This document shows, piece after piece, positions 70 through 63,754 of a stretch of 64,000 bases of DNA (position 1 is its first letter; the number at the start of each line of letters is the position of its first letter). A program made the translations under genes and the position numbers. The stretch spans positions 3,286,001 to 3,350,000 of the forward strand of contig NC_047062.1 of assembly GCF_902459465.1 (NCBI RefSeq), read 5' to 3'. The notes under the pieces were generated by a model. The model searched no databases and was not told the DNA's origin. It was given only the letters and a program-made list of their open reading frames with translations. Source of the stretch: Asterias rubens (lineage: Eukaryota).

Positions 70-262
70 GGTGTGATCCCAAACGGCAGTTAACGGTTGT
101 ATGGCTTCTGACTGGCACCCCCGAACAAAGATATTGACAAAATAGGAACACCGCCAATATAGGGCTAGATAGCTCAGTTGGTAGAGCGCCAGCACGTTAA
201 TCCAGAGGTTGTTGGTTCGAATCCCACTCTAGTCAATTCTTTGTTCAACCCCAAAAATCATT
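70..262 (+). mobile_element. tRNA(Asn-like)-derived SINE-like interspersed repeat
   Basis: Cloverleaf-like segment 163-235 with A box TAGCTCAGTTGG, B box GGTTCGAATCC and a GTT loop. The same upstream body (GGGTGTGATCCC...GACTGGCACCCCCGAACAAAGATATTGAC) recurs at other sites. Confidence 0.75.
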
Positions 263-4828: not shown

Positions 4829-4926
4829 TCTTGTAAATAAAATCCCTGTCCAGTAAAGATTCTGATTTTAAAGTCCTGCCGACTTGTGGATTTTCCCCTC
4901 AAATTTTAGCCCCGATTGATCCGTAC

Positions 4927-19600: not shown

Positions 19601-22600
19601 ACTGAAGTCTGCGTTCTTATCTGCTGCAAGGTTGGTTGTGTGTAGAGTTGTCAAAATCTGTTTGAGGGTGTCCATAAATATAAGAACAGTACTATGAGCA
19701 ACTACCATTGTATTGGCACCTGATAAAAGTAATGATTGATTGATTAATTGAAATGCATTAAATTGTTACTGTATAACTAAGCTTGGGCGATACCAGAATA
19801 TTATCAAATATCGCGATACTAATTTGGAAACGATTTCAATATCGGATCGATTTGGTTTTAATCGAAATATCGATATATCGCGATATCGATTAAGTATCGC
19901 AATATCGCGATATCGATTAAGTATCGCAATATCGCGATGTATTTCCTAGCTGAGACATCTTGCATCCCATAGGTTTGGAGTAAAACCAGAAGAATAGGTC
20001 ATTAGAACACCTCTCTTATGCTGTGACTGTCTCTTCTACAACTTTCACTGGGAGTTTGAAGACTGATGATGTCAAATTTAATTAATCGCGATTATATCGA
20101 ATATCGCGATATATTGTCGGCGATATATCGTGAATAAAATAAATGTATATCGCCCAAGCTAAATAGTAACAGACTTTTGAATTTGAATTTTGGGTGAACA
20201 AAGAAATAATGACCAGATTGAACAGTTTGAGACCGGATTTCATGCCAGCATTCTGCTAACTGAACTATCTAGCCCTATGATGGCAAGCAAACTCCCTATC
20301 TTTTAATATCTTTGTTTTGGTGTGACAGTCAGAACCATAAAGACCCAATATTAAAGGCAGTGGACACTATTGGTAATTACTCAAAATAATTATTAGCATA
20401 AACCTTATTTGGTAAAAAGTAATGGGGAGAGGTTGATAGCATAAAACATTGTGAGAAACGGCTCCCTCTGAAGAGACGTAATTTTCGAGAAAGAAGTAAT
20501 TTTCCACGAATTTGATTTCAAGACCTCAGATTTAGAATTTAGGTCTCGAAATCAAGCATCTGAAAGCACACAACGTCGTGTGATAATGGTGTTTTTTCTT
20601 TCGTTATTATCTCGCAACTTCGATGACCGATTGAGCTCAAATTTTCACAGGTTTGTTATTTCATCCATATGTTGAGATACAGCAAGTGAGAAGACTGGTC
20701 TTTGACAATTACCAATAGTGTCCAGTGTCTGTTTAAAGATCATTTATCAAGGAAACTGACTGGGTGAATTTCAATAAAGTTGAATGGAACAAAGAAAAAA
20801 TCATCAAGACCAGGATTTAAATCTGACTTTCAGATTAACATTGCCTCTTAGAAGTGCCTCTTACAAAAGGAAAATTACTGTGCCCCTTCAAGAGTGAAAT
20901 AATAATCCCGAAGTCTTATACAGCGCACGTATCTACCTAACAAGGTACTTAAGGCGCTGAGTATATACAAACTTTCAGAAAGATAGTTTATTGAAGTGAT
21001 GAATTCTGAGACCCAAATATGTAGCATCTTATAATGTTTACAAGGTGTACGGCGCATACAGCAGCCACAGCCAGGAACACCGGGGCGAACCCCTTCTCTT
21101 TTCGATAAGTGCATTGGGTTCTTTTACATGCTTTATACCACACACAGGACCAACGGCTTTACACCCTATCCGAAGGACGAAGCAATGGCTGGGGATTCGA
21201 ACCCACACTCTGCTGATCAGAAACACCAGAGTTTGAATTCAATGCTCTTAATCGCTCGGCCACGACACTTCCACAACGATTGATGTAATGCTTATTCTTG
21301 GGCCAGGGTTACTGACATTTGTTATCGTTGCAAAGTTGTTGCAAATGAAAGCTGACGTAATGACAATTTGCTTTTTCTGCTCAGTGGTTGGTTTGGCATC
21401 GGCGGTAGCAGGCAGGGTACCGAGGATCAAATAGGTGGCAACAGGCACAAGCCAAAGGTGGAACCAGCCACATCTCTTCCAATCAGGTAAGTGCATTTTT
21501 GATGATTCTTTGTCCTTGATGGAATGAAATTGATAAAAAACTCAATGGAAATCATTTTATCACCTGATGGTGACTAGAGCAAGCTAGTCGAAACGTTGAG
21601 ACAGTTAATAGGGATCCTATGTGGGATGACACTCCTGGAGCTCCGTATATAAGCTAAAAAAGTAGTCCTACCTTCCAACCAGGTAGTAGACAAACAAAGC
21701 AGGACAGCTCTTTTCAGATCTGAGAAGTCTCCCAAACGATCTGAAAAATCTACTCTGCGTTAGTTCTCTAAAGGACAAACTTTACCTGGCAAGTAGATAC
21801 ACACATGGTGTTCCTGAAAACCAAATATATATTGATACCTCACCATGCAATGCCTCAAATCACATATAATTTTATCATTATCATCAAATTGTGTATGTTT
21901 ACTGTAAATCTGTGGGCATTGTTTTATTGTGTTAATGCAGATCTCCAGTTAATATTTCCGTTCAATGTTAAAATTTATTACCAAAATGTGATGAAAATAG
22001 GGGTCAACATTCGCTTCTTTATTATCTTAAATATCAAGTAATAAACCACAAGGGAAATTGACTGGGTAATTTTTAACTAACATTAGGTTGATCAAGTTTA
22101 AACTGACTATAGTTTAACTGGAGGTCGCAGGTTCAAGTCCTGTTCTAGTCAAATGGTCTTTGCTCAACCTAAAATTATTTCATACTTTAGTCAAGAAAAC
22201 ATGAAAGGCATAGTGAACAAAGTTTCATTTCATTTGAAAGTAAAAGCAAGCAAGTCAATACTTTAAACATCCATTGAAACGTCAAGCTGAAACCTGAGGT
22301 TCTTTTCAGAACCCAACCCCCTCCCCCACCACCTCATTTATGTACATGGTGTTACCGTAAACCTTTCCATATCCATTGAATTATTAAGAAAACAGTTTGT
22401 AATTTTGTTTCCGTCGTACATGTTTGCCTAACAAAAAGCTGCAAACTAATATATACATAGAAATTGTTGCTGTATTTTTTTGAGAAAGTGTACATTTTCA
22501 AATTTTTAAAATTGGAAGGGAAGCGGCATAAAATACAAGTAAAGCTTCCACAAAGTAGGGCACTTGCGAATTCACAGGCATTTTTTGAATAATTATAACC

Positions 22601-25600
22601 TAAAAGCGTCATAATATTTGTCAAATAAATCTACATGTACATATGTAACGATGAAAAATCTGCATTATATAATTATAACATAAAAGCGGCAATATATTTG
22701 TCAATTATAATTTTACACATTTGTGACGATGACATATTATATTTGTCTTGGGTTGTGCAGTTTTTCCACCTTTGGTCACATTTATTCCGTGTTGTGTTTG
22801 CAGCTAATGTTAATAGTTTCTTTTGCAAAACTGCCTCAAAGTGATATACATTTGGTTAACCAGGGTAGCCCAATCAGTTATCAACAAACAATTACAGAGT
22901 AAAATAGCCATACAACTAATCAAGATAAAGTCATTAGCAGAAAAATCCTTAAAATTATACAAAATTACATGAGAATGTATATGAATAATAAATGTTATGA
23001 GTGCAAGATTTAAACAAGACATAGCCTTGAAAGTGTTCTCTCCGTTGCATGAATGTAAATAATTTATTAATGGTTTTATATAATATCCGAGTAAATCTGT
23101 GTCTTTTAGAGGGAAAAACCATCATAATGCACAAGAATGCAACATGGCTTCCACTAACATACTGGGTCGCATTAAGTGTGGATACTGGTCTTTGAAACTA
23201 GTTGCTAATATGCCATTATACCTTATTACACTGGGCAATCCCCCCACCTCCCCTCCCCCGCTTCATTTGTTTGTAAACAGATGCACTGAATGCAAATGGA
23301 ACTCTTCAGTAATACAAAACGATAACAATTTAAATAATATCGAGTTTTAAGACCAGTAGGGTAAAGTTTAACTTTGGGTCGAACAAAGAAATTGATACGA
23401 TCAACGAATCAATGTGCCGGCTCTGCACTTTCTGAGCTTTGGCCCTATGTTGACGATCTCCTTATATTGTACTAATATCTTTACTCTGGGTTTTAGTCAG
23501 CAGACATACAATCATAGTCACCGATCACACCCAAATTTACAGCACAACCTGGGAAGCGGCGACCAGGAGATCACCTGAAAAGGGTTGCAACTTCTTTTTA
23601 TTTCAAATATCAAGTAATAAATTAGAATATTCCCTTCTCGGTTTTTGTCTGAAACGGCATCCCTTTAATGAACTAATGCTCTCAATAATTTTTGCAACAC
23701 TTCCAAGTAGACATGATTCGTTTGCACAGTTTTATCATCAGCATTCTGTCACTTCTGTGTGCTGTAGTTTTTAAGTTGATTTTGAAGTGGGATATATCTA
23801 TAACAACTCCTTTAAAAGTCTTATCGTCTGTGATGTATGATGTCTGTGGTGGTAATGTGCTCCAGTTTTCCATAGTTATTTTTGGGTATAAATGATTATA
23901 CCCCGGAAGTGATAACAATATTTTGAGAGCGCCCTCACACGGTCTGAAATATGGGATGTTGCCTTGCATGTCATGGCCCTCAATTTTCTTTGTGATGGAA
24001 GATTTTCAAAGAGCGGCAATCAGCTACCACAAGAGAATCGTCATTGTTAAAGGTGATTCCATAAACGTCAAACAGTTCCTTGACCTCCGTATTGGCGAAA
24101 ATACCCCCGGGGGTGTAATGGTAGATCTCATCCTTGCCGCTTCTACACTTACTTTTCTGGGCTGCCACATAGATCTCCCCCAGATCGTCACAGCAGACCC
24201 CCGTTGGGAAGACCTGGTTTCCGCTCATGTCTGACGTTTCAACAGAGAAGACTATGTTGCTGTCGAGGTCAACGGCGACCAGTCTCCCAATTTCATAGTT
24301 GGTGTAGATCAGGTGTTGAGTAGCCCTGTTGAAGGTCAGATACTGGCCGATGTGGTCGGCCGGTATGGTCTTTAGCAGAGACCCAGCATCATCTAGAAGG
24401 CCAATTCGACCTTTTTCTCTGTCGCCTACTGCAATCTTGAAGGGAACTGCGATCTCTTTCCCTGGAATCCCTTCAACCACAGTGAGGCAGGCAAGTTCTT
24501 CGGAATCCGCCCATGGTGCTACATCAAAGAGGACGTTGTTTTCTGGACCGATTATTTTGACCCTTCTCTTCTCTGCGCTGTTAGAAGTGACAACAATTCT
24601 GTCTTCTGAAGCAACAGCGATCGCAGTGGAGTAGCTTAGGGGGCCTACTTCATCTGGTAGAATCTTCATTTGCACACCGGCAGGACTGTAAACCATTAAT
24701 TGGTTACGACCTCTGTCAAAGATCAGGAGGTTTCCACTTGGAAAAGCTGCGACATGGAGCAAATCATCAAAATGGTTGGTGTTTTCCATCTCTTCACCAA
24801 CATTTGATTTCAAGTCCCATTTCTCAGTCATCAGAAACTTTCCCAGGTTTTTGTTAGACTTGCTTTCTTTGAAGTTGACATATGATAAGCCATATGGCAC
24901 AGAGTCACGTGTTGTGCTGTTCAATTCTTTCAAATGATGCTTAATTTTGGATTTTAGGCTCAAAATCTCAGAGTGACTTGCTCGTGACATGATTTTGCCA
25001 ATCTTTTTAAGGTTTTGTTTTGCCATCTTGACCTTTTTGCTGTTGTTGATTCTTACCTTTCCCAATGCTACGACTCTTTTGTTGTAAGCCAACTGAAGCG
25101 TCCCTCTCAGTCGTCTTTCCTTGTTTCTGATTTTGGCGACTTCCTGATCAGCTTTGGCTGAGATTTTCCTCTGGGCGTTACTGTTCAGCTGCTTCAGCCT
25201 GCTCTCTGCGTGTTTGGTCAGAGTCTCGGCATCTTGAAAAGACTCTCTGGATCTTTCTGCTTGGGTCATTAAACTCCCAACTTCTGATCTGCAACAGTCT
25301 ATAGCCTCCTCAATGTCAGTGTAGCTGTGGTCCGGGCTGCGGTGGTCAAGCACAGTGCACGTCGTGCATATCAGCATCTCACAGGTGATACAGAAGAAGC
25401 AGCAGTTCTGATCGCTGTGCTTGCTACACTTGGGATTTTGATCTCTCAGCTTGCTCTTGAAGGTGATCTTGCCGGACTTCAGGTCTGCCATGGGTACAAT
25501 ATTATGGTTCTTCAGGGCTGTCAAACGCTGGTGAGCATTCTGACACTCAAGACACAGAAAGTTATCACAGTCCATGCATCTTGAGACGGCGGTGTTATCC

Positions 25601-28600
25601 TCTACGCATGCTTGACATCTGACCTTAGACACGGCGCCAGAGATCTTATCCTTGAGGACTGCCTCCTCCACCAGGCCTCTTAAGGTGTTGTTGTTCATCA
25701 GCCCCGTCAAGCCATTCAGAGCTCTCGTTTCGACATCACAAACGGGACAGAGGACTGTTTTGAAACCATCCTCTTTTTTTGACACGCTCTTTTCCAGACA
25801 CGGTCTGCAAACAGTGTGAAGACAGTCCAGTATCTTCGGCTCATGGAAGTAATCTTGACAAAGAGGGCACGAGATATCAGTTGAATCATCAATATCCTCT
25901 GGTAGTGAAACAACCTTTGCTTCTGTGTCTATAAACTCTTTCTTGACTTGGACAACCTCAAGACAGTCTGTAAAAAAAAATATATATATATTTGGTTTTT
26001 ATATGGCCCTTTTACATACACCATGTCTCAAAGCACTTCCAGCATTAATACCTGATCACTGAGCCATTTCATTCCTTCAACCATCTCAGCTCCCTGGGGA
26101 GTATACAGCCTGTGCCGCCAAATATGTAGCGCACTAAGCTAAACCAACTACAAGAACCATCTCTGCCCGCACAGGTACCCATTTACCACATGGGAAGAGA
26201 GAAGCAATTATAGTAAGTGTCTTGCTCAGGGACACAAGTGTCACGACCGGGATTCGATCCACACTCTGCTGAACAGAAATACCAGAGCTTAAGTTCGGTG
26301 CTGTTATCCACTCGGGGCCACAACACACTACAATTATTTAAATGTGGCGTGTCGTGGCTCAGAGCTTAAGAGCACAGGACTCAAGCTCTGGTGTTTCTTT
26401 CTGTCAGCAGAATGTGGGTTCAAGTCCCAGTAAAATTGTATTTTAGCTGGTTACCCTGTTCTGGTAAGCATAATTTTGTTTTGTTTATCTAGTTCTCATG
26501 CCTGGATCATTAAAAAATAATACAAGACTACTAGAATGAACAAAAAGAGGAAAACAAAAGAGAAAAGTAAAATAGGTTAACAATTACATCAAATATATGC
26601 ATTAAGAAAAAGTACTAGACAGTGCTGTAGTCAAGTACTTTTCAGTTGAGTTTCAAGTACTGACGAGTAACAGGATGATCAAGTAGTACTTGAGTATCAG
26701 TCCTCGGGCCAACAACGTCCTCTGATATAAGAGTATCGAGTCACAAAGCCTTCACAAAATTTTGAGTAAAAAGGTGGTAACGAACCTGTACAAAAACCTA
26801 CATTCTTCTATTCCTTGCATAATGCACATAAAGGAAAACAGAGAGAAAAGTAGTATTTTGACCATGAGTATGTTAAAAAAGGAAACTTTATACATTTTCG
26901 ATCAAGTACATGGCTTAAATTCAGATTATTTTCCAACTTTGTAACGAGAATGTGCTCATAAAGTATGATAAACATTTGTAGTTGGTATCTAGCATGAAAC
27001 GCTACCTAAGCGAACGTATGACTTATAATATGACGTATAACATAAGCTGCACTGAAACTGCCTTGATAAGTAACCAGCCCAAACTCCCATTCATCACTGC
27101 CCAGTGCACATTGCATGCATTGTCCGCTTGACTAAACACTGGCCTTACCTAGAAAGCGAACGTTATTTGACTTATAATATGACGTATAAATACTGGCGTT
27201 ACCTAAGCGACCGTTATGATGGCCTATAATATGACGTATAACGTAAGTTGCACTGACGTTGTCGAGTAGTGACCAGCCATAAACTCCTTTTCAATGGCTA
27301 TCAGATTAGGGCGCTGGGAACTTGCAATCTGCCCGGCGCACATTGTCCACTTGACAATTAGCCAGAATGTAACTTCAACTAGCATTCATTGGCATTTAGG
27401 TATTATGTAGAAACAAAAGTGATTTAAAGTTGGTTAACTGTGAAACCAAACTTGAAGGTGGTAAACTCTTTCAAACTTGGCCTTTGAACAAAATGTGCTT
27501 CTTTCTTGAACTGTAAAGTAATGTGGTCATAGTGTTTGCTTATTAAAGCAATAGTTTTCATAACAAAAGACCAAAAACTCTTACAATTTGTGAACACTAC
27601 CGAACGAGTGATTAGCTTTAGATTACAACAAAATATTTTGTTCATGTATTTATCACTTCAGTTTGAAGTTTTATTCTCCTCTTATATTTTGTGCCATAGA
27701 GTTTTGAAGAAATCTTTACATTGTAAATTCAGTTTGGGAAAATGTTTGGGACAAAAATGCGAGAAATTCATGTTTGTGACACCTGCTCCCCTCTACATGA
27801 AACATACATGTAGAACTTGATATTTTCATGAGAACAAATGAGTCAATTCCAGATAGGAAGGACATTAGGAAAGTATGGAACTTAAAATAAACATGTTGTA
27901 ATCGACTTTTCACTATTTTCTTGTGACCCAGATGACCGATCCATCTCAAACTTCTACAGGTTTTTATGTTTGTGGTGGACTACATAAAGTGCTTATCACT
28001 GCTAGCAATTGTTTTGTTGTTAGCAAAAAAACTAAACAATTCTGCAATCCAAAAATAAATGAAATTGAGTAAGCACATGTAATTAATAACAGAAGTTACA
28101 TCCACATCCCTGGCAAGGTGTAAATTTATCCCTTCAAATAGTGTCATCAAACGGTTTATGGTTTTGTTATTTCCTGTCATAAGTATTACTTAGCGCTGGA
28201 AAAAAAAAATCTGCCTAAATCGACTGCATTTTTTCAAAATGTATTTTCAAATACAAGTGATAAGTCAGAAATAAACAAGTTTTTTTTCCCCCTCAGTCAT
28301 GGAACAACCCCTGCGATGTACTCCTCTCAGCCATTTTGTCTAATTGCTCCTAACGTGTACGTTAACCACATGTTAAATAATTAAAAAGTCCGCATTATGG
28401 GGCCTAGTTTGCCCTTTATTAGAATAATACCAAACAATGTAATTGCGCTATCGCCGGTGTAAAGCGCCGAACAATGCATGCAAGGTGCACTGGGCAGATC
28501 ATCTGTCATTCATCGGAGCCACTGAATGGAGTTTAGGGCCAGTTAATTACGTTACCAAGGCAATTTCAGTGCAGCTTACGTTATACATGTACGTCATATG

Positions 28601-31600
28601 TGACCCACTCTGTTAAAATGAGTCACATGTCGCCCAAGGCAATATTAAGTTATGGACAGTTTAATGTGGAAAATGTATTTCCGCGCTTTTTTCAATTTTC
28701 ACAAAGCACTAAGATTGATCTTAACTTTGTATCAATCTTAATTGCTAAGCAAAGAGTGACGTCACAATACCAATTACCCTGTCCTTGGTTGTACTCTGTT
28801 TCGTTTATTTTTCCCGTGCAGTTTATTTTTGTTCCTATCCCATATCATTTATTAGTCCATTTTCTGTTTTCTTTTCCTGTGTTATTTCCCCGGCCCCGTA
28901 ATTTTGTTTTTGTCCTGCGTCCTGATCATTATTTTATCGTCCTGTTTTTCCCGTTTGTGTTAATTGTCAGTCGAATTAATTTTGTTAACCAAAGCTTAAA
29001 AATAATTTGTCATGTGCAATGAATGTCCAAAATGCGTAAACTTTTAAGGTATGTTTTACTACAAAAAAAGTTGTGTGTTTGTGGAGGGGGGAGGAGGTAA
29101 CAAAAGAGGTGTAGATGTCGCAAGTTTTAAGACAAAAATGAATGTCCCCTTGTGTAAACTTTTAATGTAAGGCGTGTTCTATTCAGTTTGCTTGAGGACG
29201 GATGCATGTGTCCTGAAAAAATGGAGCTGCGTTATAGGTGCCGTTCCCCCGTCCCCTGCCTCTCCCATATCCCCGTGCTCTAAAGCCCGCCTCCGATCTC
29301 CATGATCCCGTCCCGTACCACAGTTAAATAAAAGGTGCCGTTCCTCCGTCCCCTTCCCTCTCCCCTTCCCTCTCCCTGTCCCAAGTGCTCTAAAGCCCGC
29401 CTCCGATCTCCATGATCCCGTCCCGTAGCAAAAGTTTAATAAAAGGTGCCGTTCCCCTGTCCCCTTCCCTCTCCCCATCCCGCGTGCTCTAAAGCCCGCC
29501 TCCGATCTCCATGATCCCGTCCCGTACCACAGTTAAATAAAAGGTGCCGTTCCTCCGTCCCATTGCCCCTCCCTCTCCCCGTCCCACGTGCTATTTAAAA
29601 GGTGCCGTTCCCCCGTCCCCTTGCCTCTCCCCGTCCCACGTGCTCTAATGAAAGAAATAGATTCTCCATGATCCCGTCCCATTGCAAAAGTTAAATGTAA
29701 GGTGCCGTTTCCCCGTCCCCCTTCTCCTTCCCCTTCTCTCTCCCCGACCCACTTGCTCTAATATCTGACTTGTGGGACGGGGAGAGGCAAGGGGACGGGG
29801 GAACGGCACCTTTTAAATAGCATGTGGGACGGGGAGAGGGAGGGGCAATGGGACGGAGGAACGGCACCTTTTATTTAACTGTGGTACAAGATCATGCAGA
29901 ACGGAGGCAGGCTTTAGAGCACGCGGGACGGGGAGAGGGAAGGGGACGGGGGAACGGCACCTTTTATTAAACTTTTGCTACGGGACGGGATCATGGAGAT
30001 CGGAGGCGGGCTTTAGAGCACTGGGATATGGGAGAGGCAGGGGGACGGGGGAACGGCACCTATCACGCAGCTCCATTTTTTCAGTCCCATTGCAAAAGTT
30101 AAATGTAAGGTGCCGTTTCCCCGTCCCCCTTCCCCTTCCCCTTCTCTCTCCCCGACCCACATGCTCTAATATCTGACTCCGTTCTCCATGATCCCGTCCC
30201 ATAGCAACAGTTAAATAAAAGGTGCCATTCCTCGGTCCCCCTGCCCCTTCCTCTCCCCGTCCCAGTTAAATAAAAGGTGCCGTTCCCCCGTTCCCCTACT
30301 TCCTCTCCCCGTCCCACGTGCTCTAATGTCTGACTCCGTTCTCCATGATCCCGTCCCATAGCAACAGTTAAATAAAAGGTGCCATTCCTCGGTTCCCCTG
30401 CCCCTTCCTCTCCCCGTCCCAGTTAAATAAAAGGTGCCGTTCCCCCGTTCCCCTACTTCCTCTCCCCGTCCCACGTGCTCTAATGTCTGACTCCGTTCTC
30501 CATGATCCCGTCCCATAGCAACAGTTAAATAGCAGGTGCCGTTTCCCCGCCCCCTTCCCCTTCCCTCTCCCCGTCCCACGTGCTCTTAAGCCTGCCTCCG
30601 TGCTCCGTGATCCCGTCCCATATACGCCTCTCTTAATATTTATGCATGACGTCATAATTCTTACCCAAAATGAGGCTATGGGCGCGCGCAGCCACTGTAC
30701 TGTACGCGCGCTTGCATTGTACGCGCGGGCTGCCCATAGCAACAGTTAAAACGGCGGGCAAAACCCCACCAATTTTAGTGGTTTTTTGCTCATAAATCTG
30801 TCAATTTTCAACGGATTTTGTTCAAAAATAGATGAGTGTCAAGACGAAGTCAGCTCTTTTCTTCCGTGTAAATTTGGCGAGGTTTGATGCGGTATCCAGG
30901 GAGGAGATCCAATAACATACACACACACACACAGCTGTGTTTATGGTGTAAACCGAGGACTTCTCTTTGTTCTCCCATTGTTTGGACATAGTTTATTTTT
31001 TAGACGTCCCTATTGGTTTTGTACACAAATTCAAATTGAGGAAACCTCGGTGTGACTTTTTCCCGGATCCCTTTTGTTATAACCTTCTCCAAGTCCTCGG
31101 TTTGAATGCGTAGACATGCCCACACACACACACACACACACAAATCGGCTATTTATAAAGAGATGGTTAACCTTTAGAACACTTACTTTTAGGCAATAAA
31201 GCTATGAATACAACAATTTTGTGATCATACTTATGTCTAATTTGTATCCTTGTGCACACGATGTTTAAAATATCATTTTACATGTAATTCGTTTTTCACA
31301 AAAAATGGTGTAGTGGCTAATTTCAAACGGAAGTAACTCAGCAACGCGATACACCCCAAAGCTTAAACACATACCAAATTACTGCTGCTGATGTGTTCTT
31401 TCCAGCCATGCATATAACTCAATTTCTGAAATTGCCTACATCTGACTCATTTTCACAGAGCGGGTCACATATTATAAGTCATACGTTTGCTTAGGTAGCG
31501 TTTCATGCTAGATACCTAGTACCACCAAAATGGTACTCAACGTAAACTCAATTATGACTACCTAGTATGGATACTTCAACACCAGTATTAAAAGAGAAAG

Positions 31601-40600: not shown

Positions 40601-40669
40601 ACACAATAGGTATATCAAGTAAGCTGGCTCCTCTCCTTGTAGTAGTTTATATGGCATCAGTAATAATAA

Positions 40670-40713
<44 letters not shown>

Positions 40714-55700: not shown

Positions 55701-58700
55701 TGGTTCTATCTATGATGAGTTGTATAAAATTAGTTTTAAAGAAATATACACTGTAGGCCTATATATTTTGTGCGAATCTGTTGACAGTTGCACAGATTAG
55801 CACCCAATGTTTGCTTGTCCACCTGACTTGCTAGCTTGTACATGGGGAGAACCCTGACGATCACCATGGCTTATTGATTACACAGCAACTTCCTAGGATA
55901 TATAATAAAATGCATAGCTATTCTATTAACTTTTCAAAGGTATTAATTCCCTTTCTCGGTAAGGGGTAATGAAGACTTGATTTGATGGAATGCGGAGACC
56001 AATAAAGTTTGTGTGTGAAGTCCTTACATTATAAACACAACTGGTAAGGATTCTTTGAAGTAGTAGATGTGTGGGAGGGTCAAGGGTCAACATTGAACCT
56101 GTTGTTTTGGGGGTCATTTTGTGGTCACGACCTTGACTTTGCATTTAGAAACCTGTATGAAGTTGCTAGCCAAGGGACTGTACTGAGTGGTTTCGAGTGG
56201 TGAATGAAAGTCATCGGTTTCATGTAAAAGCTGCTAAAATAAACAAAGTACATACACTTCGCTCCAAATGGAGGCAAACTTTGAGTGGAGTTATGTAATT
56301 TACAGACTATGAGGTTGTTTTCCCTATTACTGTTAACAAATAGAAAGTTTTGAGCCTTCAAGAAAGACTCTGCTAGGGTAAAAACGTCAGGCCATTAACT
56401 ATTTTTTTGCAAATTGAATTTGAATTTGAATCTTAACACTATGGACATGTAGTGGCATGTAGTAATTGCAATTCACAGCAAACCTCTAACAAAATACTGC
56501 CACAACGTACAGGGTACCACTTTTTTAAGTTGCCACAATTGAGCAGATATTAGTTTCATAATAAGTTTTTAAATATTTTTGTTGCATAATTTCTGTTCAT
56601 GGCATCTTTTAACTCGGAAAGTATTGACCTCATGCACATGATGTCATTTGAGTAGGGTGCCCTCGGATAAAGGTTGCCATTTGCTCATCCAGTGCGCTAT
56701 GCCTGCCTACTTGTAGCTATGTGTTGATCCATGGTATCATTTTTGAGCAAGTTAGGGTAGCGGCTAATTTTGACTACACCAACTTGACTAACCAGAAACC
56801 ATAGAGCACAGGGAGATTGACTATATCGAACCACGTACTGGAGCGTGGTCGACATGGTCAATTCGAGAGCTACGTCATAGTTTATGGTCAAGTCTAGTCA
56901 CTCACCCGAATTTGCTTATTGTTTTACCTCTAAAATGGTGGCCAAAATGATATCCATTGAAAAGCTTAATCGAGTGAGCCATAGTATAAACTCACATTGA
57001 GTGTTTTGTTTGAAAGAACAACAGCTGCATTGATACAAATTCACTTGCAGATCTACATGGTGCAACTGATAATTTGTTGACACTATCTGACTGTCCCCAA
57101 GAAAGAAAAATTTGTGGAATTTAACGCTTGATTGTTTTTTCTTCTTGGAAACTGGAACTGGTTGTCTGTGACTAAATTTCCCCATGTGACATGTCCTTTA
57201 GATCAATAGATGGATTGCAAATGATGTCATTGGCCGCCATCGTTGATGAAATTACTCACATGAAAGGCTATTATTGACTGGGAGTTGTGCGCAGTGCATA
57301 CACTCAAGCACTTTTCCATTGTTTTACATCAAATATGGCGGTGGATGACGCTTTGTGCAATCCATCTATTTTTTCAAGTTTAATTGTGTTAGTGTGTTCT
57401 GGTTCTCATACACGATGGAAGATCTTGACGTTATGGACATCAGCCACGGCCAGGTCACCATCTGGTGTGAATGTGATGCCATAGGGGGCGTTGAGACCTC
57501 TCACGATACAGGCAATGTGCTCTCCTTTAGGGCTGAAGTGGTGAATTTCACCCTTGTGACCTTTGACCCTGGAATGTACTGCAATGTAGATATCCCCGGA
57601 GCTGTCGCAACACACACCGGTTGGCTCGTACTCGGGGTTTTCCTCGGACATGGTATGGATGGCGAAGACTTCCTGGCCCTTGAAGTCACACGCAAGCAGC
57701 ATCCTAGCCTGGAGGTTGGTGTAGATCAAGCGCTCTGTGCTGCCGAAGGTGAGGTGTTTGGAAATCATCTCAGCTGGGACGGTCTTGATGAGAGAGCCGT
57801 CCACATTGTGGAGAGAAATGAGCCTCTTGCCCTTGTCGCCGACGGCAATCTGATTCTTGATATCCACGGCGATGCATCTGAGGTCGCTCTCTGGCTCCTC
57901 TGTCTCTGCATTGCCGTTCTTGATGCCGTTTTTGAGCGTTGATGTGGTCTCACCGGGAATGAACTGGTACATCAGCTTCCTCTGCTTGTTAAACACCTTC
58001 ACCGTGGGGCTGTCCACCACCATGAGCAGGTCATCTCTGTCTGTGGCAATGTCACAGGGTCTCTGGAGTTGCCCATCAGGGTTTTCAGCGACCCCCCGGA
58101 TGCTGCTCTTGTACTGCCCCTTGCAGTCCAAGATAGTGATTTTCCCATTGAAAGGATCGGCGATAGCGAGATCGCTGTTGGAGTACGCAGTAATACCTCT
58201 GGCCTCCATGAACTCACCATCTCCTGTACCCCGCTTTCCAAACTCATCCTTCATCTCCCACTTCTCCTCCAAGAGGAGCTTCCCAAAGTAGCCGTCGTTC
58301 TCAACTTGGCTTTCCTTGAAATCTACAAAAGACAGGCCGTGCTGAAGAACTGGGACTGGCTTCTTGGTGAGATCTTTCACGATGAACAAGATCTTGTGTT
58401 TGAGATCCAGAACCTCAAATGGACTTCCCTGCGTGTTGAAGTCTTCAGCGATGTCCATGGTGTGCTTAGACCACTTGATGTTGGCGACCAGGCTGGCTTG
58501 GAAGGCTTCGATCTCTGCCTTCCTGTCCTGCCCAATCTGCTTGACCTGTTGCTTGAGCTCCATCTCTCTCTGTCTGATCTTTGCCACTTCCTCGTCTGCT
58601 TTCTTGGAGATCTTATTGGTGGCATTGTTGACCATAGCCGTCAGACGCTTCTTGGCATGATCTGTGGAAAGCTTCGCCGCTTCAAACTCATCCTGATGTT

Positions 58701-61700
58701 CTTTTGCTTTGGTCATCTCCTGCTTGATCTCAAGTTGGCAGGTTCCGGAAGCGTCACGGGCGTCCTCGCAGCTGTGCTCAGGAGCTTTGTGGTCTGCCAC
58801 TGCGCACGCCGTGCAGATCAGCATCTGACACGTGATGCAGTAGGTGCAGATATCTTGATTGGAGTGCTTGGCACACTTCGGGATGGTGTCTCGAACCCTA
58901 CTCTTGAAGGAGACCGTTCCGGAGCGGAGGTCGCCCAACGGGGCAATCTTGTGGTTCTTCATCTTGGACAGCCTTTTGTGAGCCCACTGGCAATCCTTGC
59001 AGAGATAATCATCACAGTCCATACACCGTGATATTGCCTCCTCTCCCTCATCACATGCCTCACACTTGATCTTTTTGAGCTGACTGGCGACCAGCTGTTC
59101 CTTAAGCCCTTCCTCCTCAACCAGTGAAATCAACGTTAGGTTGTCTCGTAGGTCCTGGATTCCCGTCTCAGGCAGCGGCGTCTCCCGCTTGCAGAGAGGG
59201 CAGGTGATCTTCAGGCCATTGATCTGCTGGATCTGCTTCTGTTTGTCCAGGCAGTTGCAGCAGAAACTGTGAAGGCAGTCCAGGGTCTTGGGGTCTGTGA
59301 AGCGCTTGCAGCAGATGGTACATTTGAGATGACCTAAGCTGATCTTGTCCAGTATTGTCTTGGCTGTTATCCCGGCCATGGTTAGTGAACTTTCGTCAGC
59401 AATAATGATGAACTGTCAAAGTAAAAACCAAAAATAATCAGTTTAGTTATTTCTTAACCTAAGCATGATAAAATACTGATTTGGGTTCGGACAAAGGAAA
59501 ATTTACCAGAGCTGGGTCTGAACCAATGACCTCTGGGTTACATGCCAGCACTCTGCCAAATGAGCTATCTAGCCCTATGTTGGCGGTCTCCCTATTTTGT
59601 CAATATCTTTGTTCAGGGGGCCAGTCAGAAGCCATATAATCATTAACTGCAATGTAGCCAGGGATCACACCCAGTTTTTGGATACAACCTGACAGCCAGG
59701 GGATCACCTTTAAAAGGAGATGCAACTTTTTATTATTTCAGATATTAAAATAATAAACCACAAGGGAAACTGACTTTTAGTAAATTTGAAATAATTTGGG
59801 GCTGAAGAAAAATATATTAACACAATTTTGTTTTAATAGCTGACATTTCGATCCTTTCTCGGAGGCCGAATTACAACACAACACAACACCGCAAACATGT
59901 AGGCTCTAATGTAAACTGGTTTAAAACCAAAAGGACATGTTATTTGTGTTTCATTACCAATAACGACTTTCATATAACAATAAAACAAGTATAGTAATTA
60001 GATTGACTTTTGTAAAAGCTTAGAGATTTTTGTCCTCTGCTTTTTGCCGTGTAAGAAACATTTTTTATTAAGTATTTTTAAAGACAGTGAACACTATTGG
60101 TAATTGTAAAAGACTAGTCTTCACAGTTGGTGTATCTCGTCATATGCATAAAATAACCAACGTGTGAAAATTTGAGCTCAATCGGTCGTCGAATTTGCGA
60201 GATAATCATGAAAGAAAAAAACACCCTTGTCACCTGAAGTTGTGTGCTTTCTGATGCTTGATTTCGAGACCTCAAATTCTAAACTTGAGGTCTCGAAATC
60301 AAGTTCGTGGAAAATTACTTCTTTCTAAAAAACTATGTCACTTCAGAGGGAGCTGTTTCTCACAATGTTTTATACTATCAACCTATCCCCATTACTCGTA
60401 ATCAAGAAAGGTTTTATGATGATAATTATTTTGAGTAGTTACCAATAGTGTCCACTGCCTTTAAGCAGACTGATACTTACTTATTTATATAATATTTTGT
60501 GGAAGTTGATGACACAATTGATGAAATAATCACACAAGTTTGTAACAATTAGTAATATCAGTATTTTCTAAACCAAAGAGTATGACAAAAAACAAAGCTA
60601 TTTCTGAAGTTGAATCTCAATTTGAGAAAATGTCAATATTTATAACCATTGGAACAGTTTCATTCGATTAGAATAGTTTATGAACATAGAGATGGATAGC
60701 TCATGTTGTAGAGCGTGGACACGTTTCTGTAGGTCGTTGGTTCAAATCCTGCACTTGTAAAAACAAATGTTCAATTCCCAAACCAATCAATTCTGAGTTC
60801 TGAGTAAATGAAAAGTAGGAAACTTCCAAGGTCTATTCTATAAAAACCCAGACATTTTTATTTTATCTTGGTATAATGTGAAATGAATGCCAGTACAATA
60901 ACATAATCGATTGTTTTCCCAAAGTTATTCCAAAAGTCTGTTTTTGTGAAAAACTTTTAATGTACTGATTTAGATGTAAAACCAATGTCATCAACAGAAA
61001 AAAAAAGTTGTTAAAAAACTAACAAATTAGAAAACATCCAAAAGTCTGTTCTGTAATTTACACATAATTATCTGAATGCCAGAATACATTTTTTCGAACA
61101 AATTTACAAAATAGAAAACTTGAAAAAGTCTTTTCTGTAAACTACCTATCCCTTAGTGTTATCTAAATGTCAAACCAATGCCATAACCACATAAGAATAC
61201 ATTCTGTCTGGAAAAATTCCCCAAATAGAAAACTTCCAAAAGTCGGTATTCTAAAACAAACCCTCACCTGCTATCTGAATCTCAAAACACACAACAGAGT
61301 TTATTCCGGGGTGACTCCTGTCTTTAAAGAGAGTCCTTCAAAATAGATCTCGGAGGACAGCCAGGGCAGCGAGCCAACTTGTTCAATCAGGGGCAGCGAG
61401 CAAACTTCAGCGGGGGCAGCGAGCCAACTTGAACCCTGTGTGTGGGCTTCACTCATTCACGAACACAAACACCTGATCAGTACAGCCTGTATAACCTGAT
61501 GATGTGGCGCTCAATATGGAGCCACAGTTAAAGCCGGGTACAATAAAATCCATTCACAGGTCCCTGCCAAAAAAAAAATAAAGGCACAAACAAAAATAAG
61601 CCACACCACTTTTGCATACCTCAAAATCAGTCATTCAATTCGCCGTCATATATGACCCACATTTGAATAGGTCCATGTGATGATTAAATACCATCATGAT

Positions 61701-63754
61701 TGATGGTTGGGGGGGGGGGGTCTTTTTTACTACCTCAATAAGGCAGGGTCAACCCATCTCAGCCAGTCACCATGGGGATGTCAGACAAGTTCTTGGCAAA
61801 TAAAAATGTGGTGCGGTTTTACTTGTCTGGTTGGGGGTGGTTGTTGTTTCTGTATGAATTAGTTTTGAAGGCTGGAGCCTGTTGGAGCGTGACTGGTGTT
61901 AGCCTGCATGGGCACACCAGTCATTGTATGATTTCATACATAGGAAGTATTTTAAAATATTCCTGTGACCTGAGATTAAACCTGGCGTATGGAGTTGGTC
62001 TCCATGTTACATACCAGCATATTTAGGAATGCTATGCTAAATTGACTATTCGGCTTATAAAGTTATATAGTCTGCATAAAATGATTCAGTGTGTACTGCC
62101 ATGGTACTGCTCTGTAGAGCTTTCGTTTAGGAAGTTTCACACCTCATGACAGTTTGCCTTTTTATGATAATGATGTTTTTGTTATGAAGTTGCAGTATAA
62201 AATGTTTTTAAGGGGAATAACAAATACAGAAGGGGAAGTAATAAAACTTGTAGAAAGGTTTTGGCATTTTTTTTGGAATGAATTAAAATAAAATGGGACA
62301 ATAGAATTAGCTGTTGCGAACTGCTCACCAACCCAAAGCAGTGTCTTACTTCTGCCTTAGAGAAAGACTCTGCTAGTGTCCCCAGACGTTTAACTATTTA
62401 AAATACAATGATATAGAAGAGTTTGCGGTAACACCATGTAATGACTGTCTCTAAATGAGTTGGGGTGGTTCTGAAAAGAACCGTTGGATTAACTCGACGT
62501 TTCGATCAGTATGCTCTGATCGTCTTCTGGAGAAAGAGTTAATCCAACAGTTCTTTTCAGAACCACCCCAACTCATTTAGATATAGTCATTACATGGTGT
62601 TACCGCAAACTCTTCTACATGTATATCTTGTTTCCACCATGCAAAGTTTCAAATCCTACTTTAAAATACAATGGCTGACAATTCTCATTTAACTTAGGAG
62701 AAACATATTGCACTTGAACATGAATCAAGTGGTTATGACTTAAAGACACTGGACACTATTGGTAATTGTTAAAGACGAAGTCTTCTCACATTATTTTGAG
62801 TAATTAGCAATAGTGTCCACAGCCTTAAACTGTCACAGTTGTCTTGCTTTATACATAGCTGTAAAATAGCATTCCAAATATTGCTAAACATAAAACCCAA
62901 AGATACTGGAAATGATCAGTAAGACAAAGTAATAAATATTATTGTTAGTTCTCCCTTCAGTGGTCCACTGCCCAAAAACCAGTTTAAACTTTGGAGGACA
63001 ATTCTATTCTGTATGTCAGGCTTGTTAAAACGAGCCCCCACTGCTACATGTAAACCAATGATTTCTCATATCCCTTCAAATTCCAAGTCCAAAAGTGTTG
63101 AAAGGGACTCATAAAAAAGCTGACGGACGCGTGAAATGACAGGTTAACTGGTCTCCCAGTAGTCAATGAAAAAGTTAAAGGGTTATTCTGAAAAAGTTAT
63201 TGGCATTATTTATACCATGCCACTATTACAATTGCCAATCTCCTTCATTCTTATTTAAATGTTATGTTGGTTTAATGTTTTGTATATTTCCCTTCAATTT
63301 ATGTAATCTTGATGTTTTTTACCTTGTAAATTCAATTGTAATTTAGCCTTTGGCTACAAATAGTTGAATAAAATACCTTGAATTGAATTGAATTATTCTC
63401 TGCCACAGAACAAGTTGTGAAGTGGTGTTTACCAACCCTTAGTCAAGTATCCACAAGACGATATAGGTGATTTTCCTGTTACGACAGAGTTCGACAAATA
63501 ATTTTACATTTACTGAGAAAAAAGGACAGTAAATGAACAATGAAATTTGATTGACAAAGTTAAGACAAAACTAAACTTCAATGAATGTTTTTGGTTCTAT
63601 TCATTTTTTTAAAGGTTTGGTTTGCCAGACTTGAGGCGAAGTGGGGATTCGTTGCTACTGTCTCCTGGGTTGAACGTTGCTGTGAGTACAGACAGTTTCG
63701 GCAGGGTCATTCTGATTGATCTGGTACGAGGAATCGCCGTCAGGATGTGGAAAG
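10687..63754 (+). CDS. RAB3GAP2: Rab3 GTPase-activating protein non-catalytic subunit, N-terminal 11 exons (continues beyond the window)
   Basis: Exons 10687-10792, 11759-11802, 12503-12629, 14582-14663, 15370-15493, 15899-16100, 17043-17141, 18275-18423, 19551-19630, 21385-21486, 63615-63754. All are GT-AG with compatible phases. Peptides [72 protein letters not shown] and RFGLPD...FGRVILID...RMWKG match RAB3GAP2 as I recall it. Confidence 0.93.
11159..11571. mobile_element. Non-autonomous DNA transposon with 8-bp TSD (CCTCCTTG) and subterminal GCCGTCAACT repeats
   Basis: TIRs cggtcctactacttgc / gcaagtagtaggaccc. A second copy in the opposite orientation lies at 53749-54208. Confidence 0.85.
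13659..14198. mobile_element. Fold-back palindromic MITE (CCC termini, TTTA/TTAA flanks, piggyBac-like) interrupted by a hAT MITE
   Basis: Arms cccatatacaccgatgtgtgttagcactgtatactcagtac... / ...gtactgagtatacagtgctaacacacatcggtgtatatggg. Confidence 0.7.
13692..14049. mobile_element. hAT-type MITE, 8-bp TSD ACTGTATA
   Basis: TIR TAAGCTTGGGCGATA; subterminal GATATCGCGATAT repeats; perfect 8-bp TSD. Confidence 0.88.
17419..17714. mobile_element. TTAA-target MITE (Kolobok-like), AGRCAGTGGACAC family
   Basis: TTAA|AGACAGTGGACAC...GTGTCCACTGCCT|TTAA. Other copies at 20355-20730 and 60082-60460; fragments near 8690-9000, 9555-9690 and 62745-62830. Confidence 0.75.
18618..19238. mobile_element. PIF/Harbinger-like MITE, 3-bp TSD TTA
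   Basis: TTA|GGCCT(A)n TTGTTGGATTGCCCT ... AGGGCAATCCAACAT(T)n..GGCC|TTA. Confidence 0.7.
19778..20162. mobile_element. hAT-type MITE, same family
   Basis: Same TIRs and interior; TSD degenerate. Confidence 0.82.
20915..21275 (-). mobile_element. tRNA-headed SINE with an L2-like tail
   Basis: On the minus strand: A box GTGGCCGAGCGA and B box GGTTCGAATCCC; the tail contains cagcgc..taag. Confidence 0.6.
21563..21865 (+). mobile_element. Penelope-like terminal repeat remnant with a degenerate hammerhead motif
   Basis: CTGATGG-T-GACTAG-AGCAAG-CTAGTC-GAAAC-GTT at 21564-21597. The 3' part (cacatggtgttacc..caccatgcaatgc) recurs at ~36190 and ~45365. Confidence 0.55.
23980..25967 (-). CDS. TRIM-NHL protein copy A, main coding exon (RING, 2 B-boxes, coiled coil, NHL-like beta-propeller); 673 aa with the micro-exon
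   Basis: The frame stays open upstream of the listed GTG start (25785) to the acceptor ttttttacag|AC at 25967. C3HC4 [21 protein letters not shown]; B-box1 [20 protein letters not shown]; B-box2 [18 protein letters not shown]; C-terminal repeats such as [14 protein letters not shown]. Confidence 0.9.
25995..26430. mobile_element. Back-to-back SINE pair (full copy on minus, head fragment on plus) in TRIM-A intron 1; homologous pair at 40655-41122 in TRIM-B
   Basis: Shared caccatgtctcaaagc..gatcactg..ggggagtatacagc..gacacaagtgtcacgacc and ggctcag...ggttc(a/g)agtcccag. Copy B ends in an (AAT)n tail at ~40660-40710. Confidence 0.65.
28709..31163 (-). mobile_element. Putative non-autonomous Helitron (inner layer) carrying a minisatellite and (CA)n tracts
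   Basis: Minus-strand 5' end TCTCTTTATAAAT; 3' hairpin taagattgat/atcaatctta ending CTTAG (non-canonical); A|T host junction; no TSD. Confidence 0.5.
29213..30625. repeat. C-rich/G-rich ~85-100 bp minisatellite with an internal inverted segment (29772-30084)
   Basis: Units contain aaaaggtgccgttcccccgtcccc, cacgtgctctaa and ctccatgatcccgtccc. Confidence 0.9.
34038..34071 (-). CDS. TRIM-NHL copy A first coding micro-exon ([11 protein letters not shown]+G)
   Basis: CAAGATGG start context; 34 nt ending in phase 1 at G|gtaag, matching the phase-1 acceptor at 25967. Conserved in copies B and C. Confidence 0.75.
37037..37239. mobile_element. 203-bp MITE flanked by TATA
   Basis: TATA|GACGATGTGACCT...AGGTCACATCGTC|TATA. 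Absent at the paralogous site in unit C. Confidence 0.8.
37897..38210 (+). mobile_element. 3' end of a LINE/SINE with an (AAGTT)n tail, specific to unit B
   Basis: cagcgctttgaa..cagcgctttataaatgcattt(aagtt)4. Unit C has the empty site ggcatccaataatatatc. A 13-bp unit is repeated 3-4 times at the 5' junction. Confidence 0.65.
38379..40360 (-). CDS. TRIM-NHL protein copy B, main coding exon (671 aa with the micro-exon)
   Basis: Intact ORF that is a close paralogue of A and C, with a 2-aa deletion (EI--PF). Acceptor tttttcttacag|AC at 40360. Confidence 0.9.
42537..42570 (-). CDS. TRIM-NHL copy B first coding micro-exon ([11 protein letters not shown]+G)
   Basis: ATG at 42570; donor G|gtgaga; phase 1. 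Confidence 0.75.
43731..45051 (-). mobile_element. Non-autonomous Helitron, 1321 bp
   Basis: Minus strand 5' TCTATATTATAAAA; 3' hairpin gccacgc-aaa-gcgcggc then CTAG; inserted between A and T with no TSD. The empty site cagta|tgagc is present at ~35870-35880. Confidence 0.9.
46275..47279 (+). mobile_element. 5'-truncated non-LTR retrotransposon (L2-like), C-terminal part of the RT
   Basis: Open frame [10 protein letters not shown]...YADDTQLY...LKLNENKTE...[25 protein letters not shown], stop at 47201, (ATT)n tail. Empty site in unit B: ctagcaatgcttc. Confidence 0.9.
47349..47698. mobile_element. hAT-type MITE, same family, inverted, 8-bp TSD ATGTGACT
   Basis: Perfect TSD at 47341-47348 and 47699-47706. 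Confidence 0.88.
48385..48509. mobile_element. PIF/Harbinger-like hairpin MITE, TSD TAA, 80 bp beyond the TRIM-C stop codon
   Basis: TAA|GGCCGTGTCCGAAACG...CGTTTCGCACACGGCC|TAA. Absent in unit B. Confidence 0.85.
48589..50576 (-). CDS. TRIM-NHL protein copy C, main coding exon (673 aa with the micro-exon)
   Basis: Intact ORF; acceptor tttttcttacag|AA at 50576. The longer 745-aa ORF call runs into intron sequence. Confidence 0.9.
51717..51750 (-). CDS. TRIM-NHL copy C first coding micro-exon ([11 protein letters not shown]+G)
   Basis: Identical to the copy B micro-exon and its donor. Confidence 0.75.
53749..54208. mobile_element. Second copy of the 11159-11571 family, 8-bp TSD CTGGAAGG
   Basis: TSD at 53741-53748 and 54209-54216; same TIRs and internal sequence, inverted. 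Confidence 0.85.
57406..59379 (-). CDS. TRIM-NHL protein copy D (divergent), single coding exon, 657 aa
   Basis: [21 protein letters not shown], two B-boxes, coiled coil, and a canonical NHL start [17 protein letters not shown]. The acceptor tttgacag| at 59412 implies an upstream non-coding exon. Confidence 0.92.
   Translation of the reverse strand: MAGITAKTILDKISLGHLKCTICCKRFTDPKTLDCLHSFCCNCLDKQKQIQQINGLKITCPLCKRETPLPETGIQDLRDNLTLISLVEEEGLKEQLVASQLKKIKCEACDEGEEAISRCMDCDDYLCKDCQWAHKRLSKMKNHKIAPLGDLRSGTVSFKSRVRDTIPKCAKHSNQDICTYCITCQMLICTACAVADHKAPEHSCEDARDASGTCQLEIKQEMTKAKEHQDEFEAAKLSTDHAKKRLTAMVNNATNKISKKADEEVAKIRQREMELKQQVKQIGQDRKAEIEAFQASLVANIKWSKHTMDIAEDFNTQGSPFEVLDLKHKILFIVKDLTKKPVPVLQHGLSFVDFKESQVENDGYFGKLLLEEKWEMKDEFGKRGTGDGEFMEARGITAYSNSDLAIADPFNGKITILDCKGQYKSSIRGVAENPDGQLQRPCDIATDRDDLLMVVDSPTVKVFNKQRKLMYQFIPGETTSTLKNGIKNGNAETEEPESDLRCIAVDIKNQIAVGDKGKRLISLHNVDGSLIKTVPAEMISKHLTFGSTERLIYTNLQARMLLACDFKGQEVFAIHTMSEENPEYEPTGVCCDSSGDIYIAVHSRVKGHKGEIHHFSPKGEHIACIVRGLNAPYGITFTPDGDLAVADVHNVKIFHRV
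59470..59790 (-). mobile_element. Same tRNA-derived SINE-like family, longer copy
   Basis: gagctatctagccctatgttggcggtctccctattttgtcaatatctttgttc...gggatcacaccc...aataaaccacaagggaaactgac. Confidence 0.7.
60082..60460. mobile_element. TTAA-target MITE (Kolobok-like), near full-length copy
   Basis: TTAA on both sides; reverse-complement homologue of 20355-20730. Confidence 0.78.
62411..62659 (-). mobile_element. Penelope-like remnant: inverted terminal repeat pair around a hammerhead-like core, flanked by 14-bp direct repeats
   Basis: 82-bp arms at 62414-62495 and 62536-62617; TTTAAAATACAATG at 62397-62410 and 62660-62673. Confidence 0.6.
63615..63754 (+). CDS. RAB3GAP2: RAB3GAP2 exon 11, the next exon after the 42-kb intron
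   Basis: Acceptor ttttttaaag|G and donor AAAG|gttggt. The split codon AG+G = Arg joins exon 10 (…LPI R) to [46 protein letters not shown]. Confidence 0.92.

Follow-up and report, generated by a model that had tools for sequence, protein, structure and literature searches.

A starfish RAB3GAP2 intron that probably houses an old TRIM-NHL gene beside a young, changing TRIM array

We analysed a 64,000-nucleotide stretch of Asterias rubens DNA (the window; contig NC_047062.1, positions 3,286,001 to 3,350,000, forward strand) in which one 42-kb intron of the RAB3GAP2 gene encloses four TRIM-NHL genes on the opposite strand. We read it, with a probability of roughly 0.85, as a locus of nested genes in two layers that differ in age, namely an old resident (copy 4) and a young, dynamic array (copies 1-3). 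In the history that we propose, a single-coding-exon TRIM-NHL gene, copy 4, would have come to lie antisense in RAB3GAP2 intron 10 in the starfish lineage, after the split from sea urchins and before the divergence of Forcipulatida and Valvatida, and would then have been kept single-copy under purifying selection. A fast-evolving lineage annotated as TRIM33-like, with a tiny 5' coding exon, would have arisen beside it in the same orientation, on the way toward Asterias, and the resulting array may have multiplied by unequal crossing-over of 9-10-kb units. Throughout, the host would still have spliced exon 10 to exon 11, with the guests transcribed and spliced independently.

The host exons were mapped by tblastn with full-length RAB3GAP2 proteins (11 collinear blocks), the main guide being the protein of the sea urchin Diadema antillarum. 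In A. rubens (order Forcipulatida), the window carries 11 plus-strand exons with AG/GT borders, whose joined frame runs through 418 codons with zero stops and is collinear with D. antillarum residues 1-435 at 66% identity.

10687-10792, 11759-11802, 12503-12629, 14582-14663, plus strand: RAB3GAP2 exons 1-4 (tblastn, AG/GT borders, open frame, Pfam RAB3GAP2_N)
15370-15493, 15899-16100, 17043-17141, 18275-18423, 19551-19630, plus strand: RAB3GAP2 exons 5-9 (tblastn, AG/GT borders, open frame, Pfam RAB3GAP2_N)
21385-21486, plus strand: RAB3GAP2 exon 10, 102 nt, donor GTAAGT at 21487 (Pfam, tblastn, RNA contigs)
21487-63614, plus strand: RAB3GAP2 intron 10, 42,128 bp, enclosing the four TRIM genes
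63615-63754, plus strand: RAB3GAP2 exon 11 (Pfam RAB3GAP2_N positions 305-352, E-value 5.9e-18; tblastn)

Exon 11 is preceded by AG, and a codon split as AG and G preserves the frame across intron 10. The Pfam RAB3GAP2_N matches ascend along the plus strand: the exon that ends at 21486 covers profile positions 269-305 and the one from 63615 covers 305-352, so that none is missing across the intron. A preliminary description of this DNA, made from the letters alone, had ended exon 10 at 21486 and begun exon 11 at 63615, had given the nine other introns as 405-1952 bp and had held that the duplications copied no host exon. Pfam, tblastn and the splice borders return the same coordinates; introns 1-9, measured at 965, 700, 1952, 706, 405, 942, 1133, 1127 and 1754 bp, agree exactly; and tblastn with RAB3GAP2 proteins found no RAB3GAP2-like coding sequence inside intron 10.

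Open reading frames (ORFs) and Pfam matches identify four intact RING/B-box/B-box/coiled-coil/NHL genes within intron 10, all on the minus strand.

22041-25967, minus strand: TRIM copy 1, exon 2, coding at 23980-25967 including the stop (open frame, RefSeq XP_033629577.1 of 673 aa, RNA contigs)
34038-34071, minus strand: TRIM copy 1, coding part of exon 1, 11 residues plus 1 nt; the N-terminus of the annotated protein agrees with the splice; intron 1 of 8,070 bp
38379-40360, minus strand: TRIM copy 2, exon 2, coding including the stop (RefSeq XP_033632057.1, 671 aa)
42537-42570, minus strand: TRIM copy 2, coding part of exon 1; intron 1 of 2,176 bp
48589-50576, minus strand: TRIM copy 3, exon 2, coding including the stop (RefSeq XP_033632047.1, 673 aa; AlphaFold model, NHL fold matches)
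51717-51750, minus strand: TRIM copy 3, coding part of exon 1; intron 1 of 1,140 bp
57406-59379, minus strand: TRIM copy 4, the old conserved resident, a single coding exon of 657 aa

All four guest ORFs are 100% identical to annotated A. rubens proteins, three of them named RefSeq entries, and the record LR699092.1 (GCA_902459465.3) carries the same TRIM genes. Copies 1-3 are two-exon genes with 10 shared residues plus one further residue in exon 1, a conserved acceptor, and frames open over 671-673 codons in which the Cys and His residues of the RING and B-boxes are conserved. Among themselves they are 93.6-95.6% identical in DNA; copy 4 shares about 36% identity with them. The four intact antisense ORFs of the preliminary description are therefore confirmed by domain matches, open frames and annotated proteins, but its gene anatomy had missed the short 5' exon of copies 1-3. 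We also considered copy 1 as a RING-less pseudogene, as it appeared in a start-codon-based ORF list, where it seemed truncated because no start codon precedes residue 72 of the open frame. This candidate was rejected: the frame stays open to the acceptor at 25968, encodes the RING and, joined to exon 1 some 8 kb upstream, matches the 673-aa RefSeq protein.

The difference in age between the two layers emerges from comparison with Valvatida starfish, a sea urchin and a crinoid. Intron 10 varies as follows.

Diadema antillarum (sea urchin): intron 10 of about 0.55 kb, no nested TRIM, same exon pattern
Acanthaster planci: intron 10 of about 9.8 kb, one nested TRIM
Patiria miniata: intron 10 of about 11.95 kb, one nested TRIM
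Asterias rubens: intron 10 of 42.1 kb, four nested TRIM genes
Asterias amurensis: intron 10 of about 72 kb, eight nested TRIM genes (seven TRIM33-like and the copy-4 orthologue)

The comparison of intron size and copy number between related species that the preliminary description had proposed thus reveals clear differences, from about 0.55 kb with no guest to about 72 kb with eight. Intron length tracks guest occupancy, and it is the guests and transposon debris, not the host, that set it; the series of 0.55, 10-12, 42 and 72 kb gives a clean view of a nested family inflating a host intron with the exon structure unaltered. In A. amurensis, P. miniata and A. planci alike, a copy-4 orthologue (99%, 74% and 73% identical, respectively) lies antisense between the orthologues of exons 10 and 11, so that the nesting is seen in three starfish families and, with Patiria and Acanthaster belonging to Valvatida and Asterias to Forcipulatida, is common to two starfish superorders. 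The ratio of non-synonymous to synonymous divergence (dN/dS) of copy 4 is about 0.10 at every depth compared, values that place the gene under strong purifying selection. No second TRIM was found in intron 10 of Patiria or Acanthaster, and no brittle-star or sea-cucumber RAB3GAP2 was present among the representative matches. The suggestion that the whole array is lineage-specific accordingly holds for copies 1-3 but fails for copy 4, which occupies the same intron in both Forcipulatida and Valvatida at a dN/dS of 0.10.

The young layer bears the marks of tandem duplication and turnover. Self-BLAST delimits two units.

35875-43365: tandem duplication unit with copy 2
45051-52643: tandem duplication unit with copy 3

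The two units share five blocks, 87-98.7% identical at an offset of 9.2-10.2 kb, which upholds the tandem duplication claimed in the preliminary description, flanks included. Between homologous blocks, the copy-3 unit, where a retroelement lies, has 1671 bp, versus 405 bp in the copy-2 unit. A. rubens has three TRIM33-like genes and the A. amurensis array seven. In the tree, copy 1 is the partner of the last A. amurensis copy (support 99/99), both being nearest to host exon 10 and both having a long first intron, and A. amurensis copy 2, at the opposite array end, is the partner of copy 3 (99/92); three A. amurensis array genes form a group of their own, so that orthologous pairs are mixed with species-specific duplicates. 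The outermost copies thus appear orthologous between the species, and the later gains and losses, as far as the tree and gene order tell, appear to lie mid-array, as expected from unequal crossing-over. Synonymous divergence among copies 1-3 is 0.066-0.093, equal to or above the between-species values of 0.049 for copy 4 and 0.069 for copy 1 versus A. amurensis copy 7; therefore, several copies are older than the species split.

These data bear on whether the three young units could be uncollapsed haplotypes stacked in tandem by the assembly, the true intron being shorter and holding fewer genes. The units are indeed alike (94-96% in the coding exon, up to 98.7% in the flank), and a 96%-identical variant in another public assembly hints at polymorphism. 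An artefact of this kind is nevertheless barely credible: the copies differ from one another at synonymous sites at least as much as the two species do, copies 1 and 3 each have a separate, strongly supported partner among the A. amurensis genes, an independent A. amurensis assembly has seven such genes in the same intron, and the units are set apart by the retroelement insertion and by first introns of 1.1, 2.2 and 8.1 kb. The variant itself, P0102, is a 2278-bp ENA contig encoding a 672-aa protein 96% identical to copy 2, with an N-terminus that equals the intron-derived residues of the naive ORF; as an extra variant from another assembly, it hints at allelic or copy-number diversity. In the A. 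amurensis array (CP134952.1, about 34.05-34.07 Mb), genes 3 and 5, which flank gene 4, are almost identical, with branch lengths of 0.0036, a likeness that suggests either a very recent two-unit duplication or an assembly duplication. GC-rich tandem repeats at 29538-30622 of the window (units of 55-157 bp, up to 94% matches) lie in the first intron of copy 1 and explain part of its expansion.

RNA evidence for host and guests comes from small sequencing runs of 57-171 million letters, which contain 0.78-0.93 of the sampled copy-4 words and 0.92-0.99 of the copy-1 words; the runs are so small that these shares cannot come from genomic DNA. Contigs of four runs were aligned to positions 21300-27299 at a likeness of at least 97%. 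One contig of 5130 nt matches this stretch only at 21383-21488, at contig positions 1070-1175, that is, over exon 10 and two letters on each side that also fit its neighbours, exon 9 ending in AG and exon 11 beginning with GT. A 58-nt leader added to the 1013 coding nt that the exon model gives for exons 1-9 accounts for contig position 1072, and together with the contig borders this arithmetic fits a fully spliced host mRNA. Host exon-10 contigs have depths of 4.9 and 33.9. Copy 1 is covered over 22041-25964 in all four runs at a depth of 13-172, falling to near zero at 26500-27299, and two of its contigs extend 114 and 252 letters beyond the acceptor with no match to the adjacent intron. Coverage bounded by the acceptor and the 3' end, next to a silent intron, indicates that copy 1 is a spliced transcript; its 3' untranslated region (UTR) is about 1.9 kb long and ends about 0.5 kb from host exon 10. 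Copy 4 is likely transcribed, with a word share of 0.93 in a small RNA run, the corresponding share for copy 1 being 0.98. The preliminary description had named a lack of TRIM transcription as a result that would count against it; the copy-1 contigs show transcription of copy 1, and the copy-4 word share makes that of copy 4 likely.

The same data address the possibility that the young copies are decaying, non-functional duplicates whose RNA signal is merely host pre-mRNA. Array dN/dS is raised to about 0.5 and the contigs are unstranded, as this account would allow, but we consider it very unlikely: none of the three frames is interrupted within its 671-673 codons, the Cys and His of the RING and B-boxes are kept, dN/dS is well below 1, the copy-1 depth of 13-172 exceeds that of the host exon-10 contigs and contrasts with near zero at 26500-27299, and copy-1 contigs leave the acceptor for 114-252 letters that find no match in the adjacent intron.

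Two stretches flanking copy 1, at 21500-21899 and 25900-26299 of the window, reach a summed contig depth of up to about 50,000 in the four runs versus roughly 100 over the gene itself. Both probably belong to abundant families of transcribed repeats, and the second lies directly upstream of the copy-1 acceptor; an inverted-repeat scan of the two stretches returned nothing telling. At 23631, in the copy-1 3' UTR, RNA run X20 has a 29-nt deletion that the other three runs do not have and that is likely an allele.

Several points weigh against the two-layer reading. The contigs, taken from Logan, carry no strand, and the evidence for guest transcripts covers copies 1 and 4 only. The joint between 21486 and 63615 was deduced from contig borders and gene models, exon 11 lying outside the 6-kb aligned stretch. 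Forcipulatida were sampled through Asterias alone. In the crinoid Anneissia japonica, RAB3GAP2 has no TRIM, but there is no recognisable exon 10-11 region in its model or locus; the A. japonica protein skips the exon 10-11 part, which may be an annotation or assembly gap. Lastly, the deep nodes of a careful tree collapse into a polytomy of five starfish TRIM-NHL lineages, and an approximately unbiased (AU) test does not reject a tree uniting the TRIM33-like and copy-4 clades (p-AU 0.65). The TRIM phylogeny proposed in the preliminary description thus resolves the Asterias orthologous pairs and leaves the deep starfish TRIM-NHL nodes as a polytomy.

The trees also bear on where the young lineage came from. 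Copies 1-3 may have arisen by in-place duplication of copy 4 followed by fast divergence, and not by arrival from elsewhere, an origin to which we give somewhat less than even odds. They adjoin copy 4 in the same orientation, the joined-clade tree is 11 log-likelihood units better than the quick free search as well as passing the AU test, and a five-fold higher non-synonymous rate could account for the 36% identity. On the other side stand the five-way polytomy of the careful tree, a quick tree that grouped copy 4 with other paralogues (97 in the Shimodaira-Hasegawa-like approximate likelihood-ratio test, SH-aLRT), of which starfish have many, and unlike gene structures, a 5' mini-exon in copies 1-3 versus a single coding exon in copy 4. 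Long branches make either placement of the TRIM33-like lineage unsafe.

Under the two-layer reading, one intron pairs a strongly constrained guest with a fast-turnover family. It is a natural system in which to ask if a housekeeping host suffers interference from the antisense transcription of its nested genes, and if the TRIM-NHL expansions of starfish have a role in recognition. By pairwise Nei-Gojobori estimates, array dN/dS is about 0.5, averaging 0.46 from RING to coiled coil and 0.62 in the NHL domain, and none of the listed pairs exceeds 0.76. The propeller is modestly enriched in variable columns (28% versus 21%, p = 0.035). A dN/dS above 1 was not reached in the recognition domain, as measured by domain-wide pairwise means. 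At these rates the array evolves faster than copy 4 but falls short of a demonstration of positive selection; it may diversify recognition. A stronger proposal, which we regard as possible but unlikely, is that the array would be an innate-immune recognition system under diversifying selection, akin to the restriction-factor TRIMs, with the intron as a sheltered site of expansion and possibly host-coupled expression. Copy number differs between sister Asterias species, the array rate is about five times that of copy 4, the propeller is slightly enriched in variable columns and starfish have many other TRIM-NHL paralogues; set against this, no domain exceeds a dN/dS of 1 (NHL mean 0.62), the propeller enrichment is weak and no paper was found tying starfish TRIM-NHL genes to immunity. 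More speculative still, and in our judgement improbable, is a long-lived starfish "nursery" in intron 10, in which the old TRIM-NHL resident would have made the intron permissive for antisense transcription, the derived and fast-diversifying recognition array would expand and contract, and convergent transcription would couple it to a vesicle-traffic host; if so, this would be an innate-immune family whose dosage and interference with its host gene both evolve through intron growth.

The domain assignments place the guests among TRIM-NHL proteins. For the RING, Pfam zf-C3HC4 or zf-RING_UBOX passes the gathering score in three copies (2, 3 and 4), the open frame of copy 1 contains the same residues, and the Cys/His columns are invariant or almost so across the aligned genes. 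Pfam zf-B_box recognises a pair of stretches in each of copies 1, 2 and 4; in copy 3 it recognises a single one, which stays under the gathering score. Copy 3 has invariant B-box Cys/His sets at 129-157 and 192-225, and ANCHR-like_BBOX is matched in all four copies. The Pfam NHL match scores 26.5-27.4 bits in copies 1, 2 and 4 (cut-off 20) and 19.9 bits in copy 3. AlphaFold models of copies 3 and 4 (mean predicted local distance difference test scores, pLDDT, of 81.4 and 83.8) contain a RING, two B-boxes, a coiled coil formed by one helix of about 110 residues (230-340 and 207-317, respectively) and an all-beta C-terminal domain, for which the best solved Foldseek matches are the NHL domains of TRIM2, TRIM3, Thin, Brat, Mei-P26 and TRIM71 (E-values 1e-14 to 1e-19, target TM-scores 0.71-0.82). 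The filamin domain PF00630 has no match in the four copies or their starfish relatives, cnidarian TRIM71-like relatives do have it, and the guests are therefore not TRIM2/3/71 orthologues. The RefSeq names TRIM33-like and TRIM56-like fit poorly, as neither describes the C-terminal domain. From this architecture, the guest proteins are predicted to act as RING E3 ligases that choose protein or RNA targets through the NHL propeller.

The only non-TRIM protein-like piece in intron 10 is the retroelement fragment of the copy-3 unit.

46350-47201, plus strand: reverse-transcriptase fragment of a retroelement, present in unit 3 only (Pfam RVT_1, E-value 2.8e-5, below the gathering score)

Six further intron-10 ORFs of 120-145 aa have no Pfam match, and Rfam and transfer RNA (tRNA) scans found nothing inside the intron.

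Taken singly, the parts of the locus are unremarkable: both the antisense nesting of genes and tandem arrays of TRIM genes are well known, and every guest gene is already annotated. Topical literature searches found no paper on the locus or on a starfish TRIM-NHL expansion. Like TRIM2, TRIM3, TRIM32/Thin, TRIM71/LIN-41, Brat and Mei-P26, the guests combine a RING, two B-boxes, a long coiled coil and a six-bladed NHL propeller; unlike TRIM2, TRIM3 and TRIM71, they lack a filamin/Ig domain between coiled coil and propeller, and at only 10-23% identity to solved NHL domains they are starfish-specific lineages, not one-to-one orthologues. Tandem TRIM arrays that evolve by birth and death are familiar from the vertebrate TRIM5/6/22/34 cluster and the fish finTRIMs, with which the starfish array shares tandem duplication, copy-number change between close species and a faster C-terminal recognition domain. 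It differs from them in that this domain is NHL and not B30.2/SPRY, the array is intronic and domain-wide dN/dS does not exceed 1.

As a nested locus, a close parallel is the insect TipE gene cluster within an intron (Li, Waterhouse and Zdobnov 2011, PMC3240667). Both are clusters of related genes long retained in one intron of an unrelated host, TipE expression being distinct from that of its host; TipE genes, however, encode ion-channel auxiliary subunits at a stable copy number, whereas here an old single gene accompanies an array that varies between sister species. Another nested protein-coding example is provided by the LRRTM genes in alpha-catenin introns (PMC3933685), and about 63% of human nested genes lie on the opposing strand and some 41% are single-exon, as cited in PMC3192792. 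The starfish guests resemble nested genes in general in lying wholly in a host intron on the opposite strand, with transcriptional interference possible, and depart from them in being multi-copy, with intron length scaling with guest number across species. By analogy, antisense placement may be tolerated if guest splice and poly(A) signals are thereby kept off the host pre-mRNA; such protection is a general nested-gene expectation, for which this locus offers two independent insertion events at most.

Three further features lie upstream of the host gene. At 7100-7900 of the window, translations carry a recurring GC-rich motif (DDRNPPSTPVGRMGGGG...) suggestive of a tandem repeat; the RAB3GAP2 start codon lies about 3 kb downstream. 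A tRNA-like element at 163-235 scores 44.8 bits against the Rfam tRNA model, with no call from ARAGORN. It is followed, at 258-4831, by a satellite of about 4.6 kb whose self-alignments are offset by about 22 bp at 94-97% identity.

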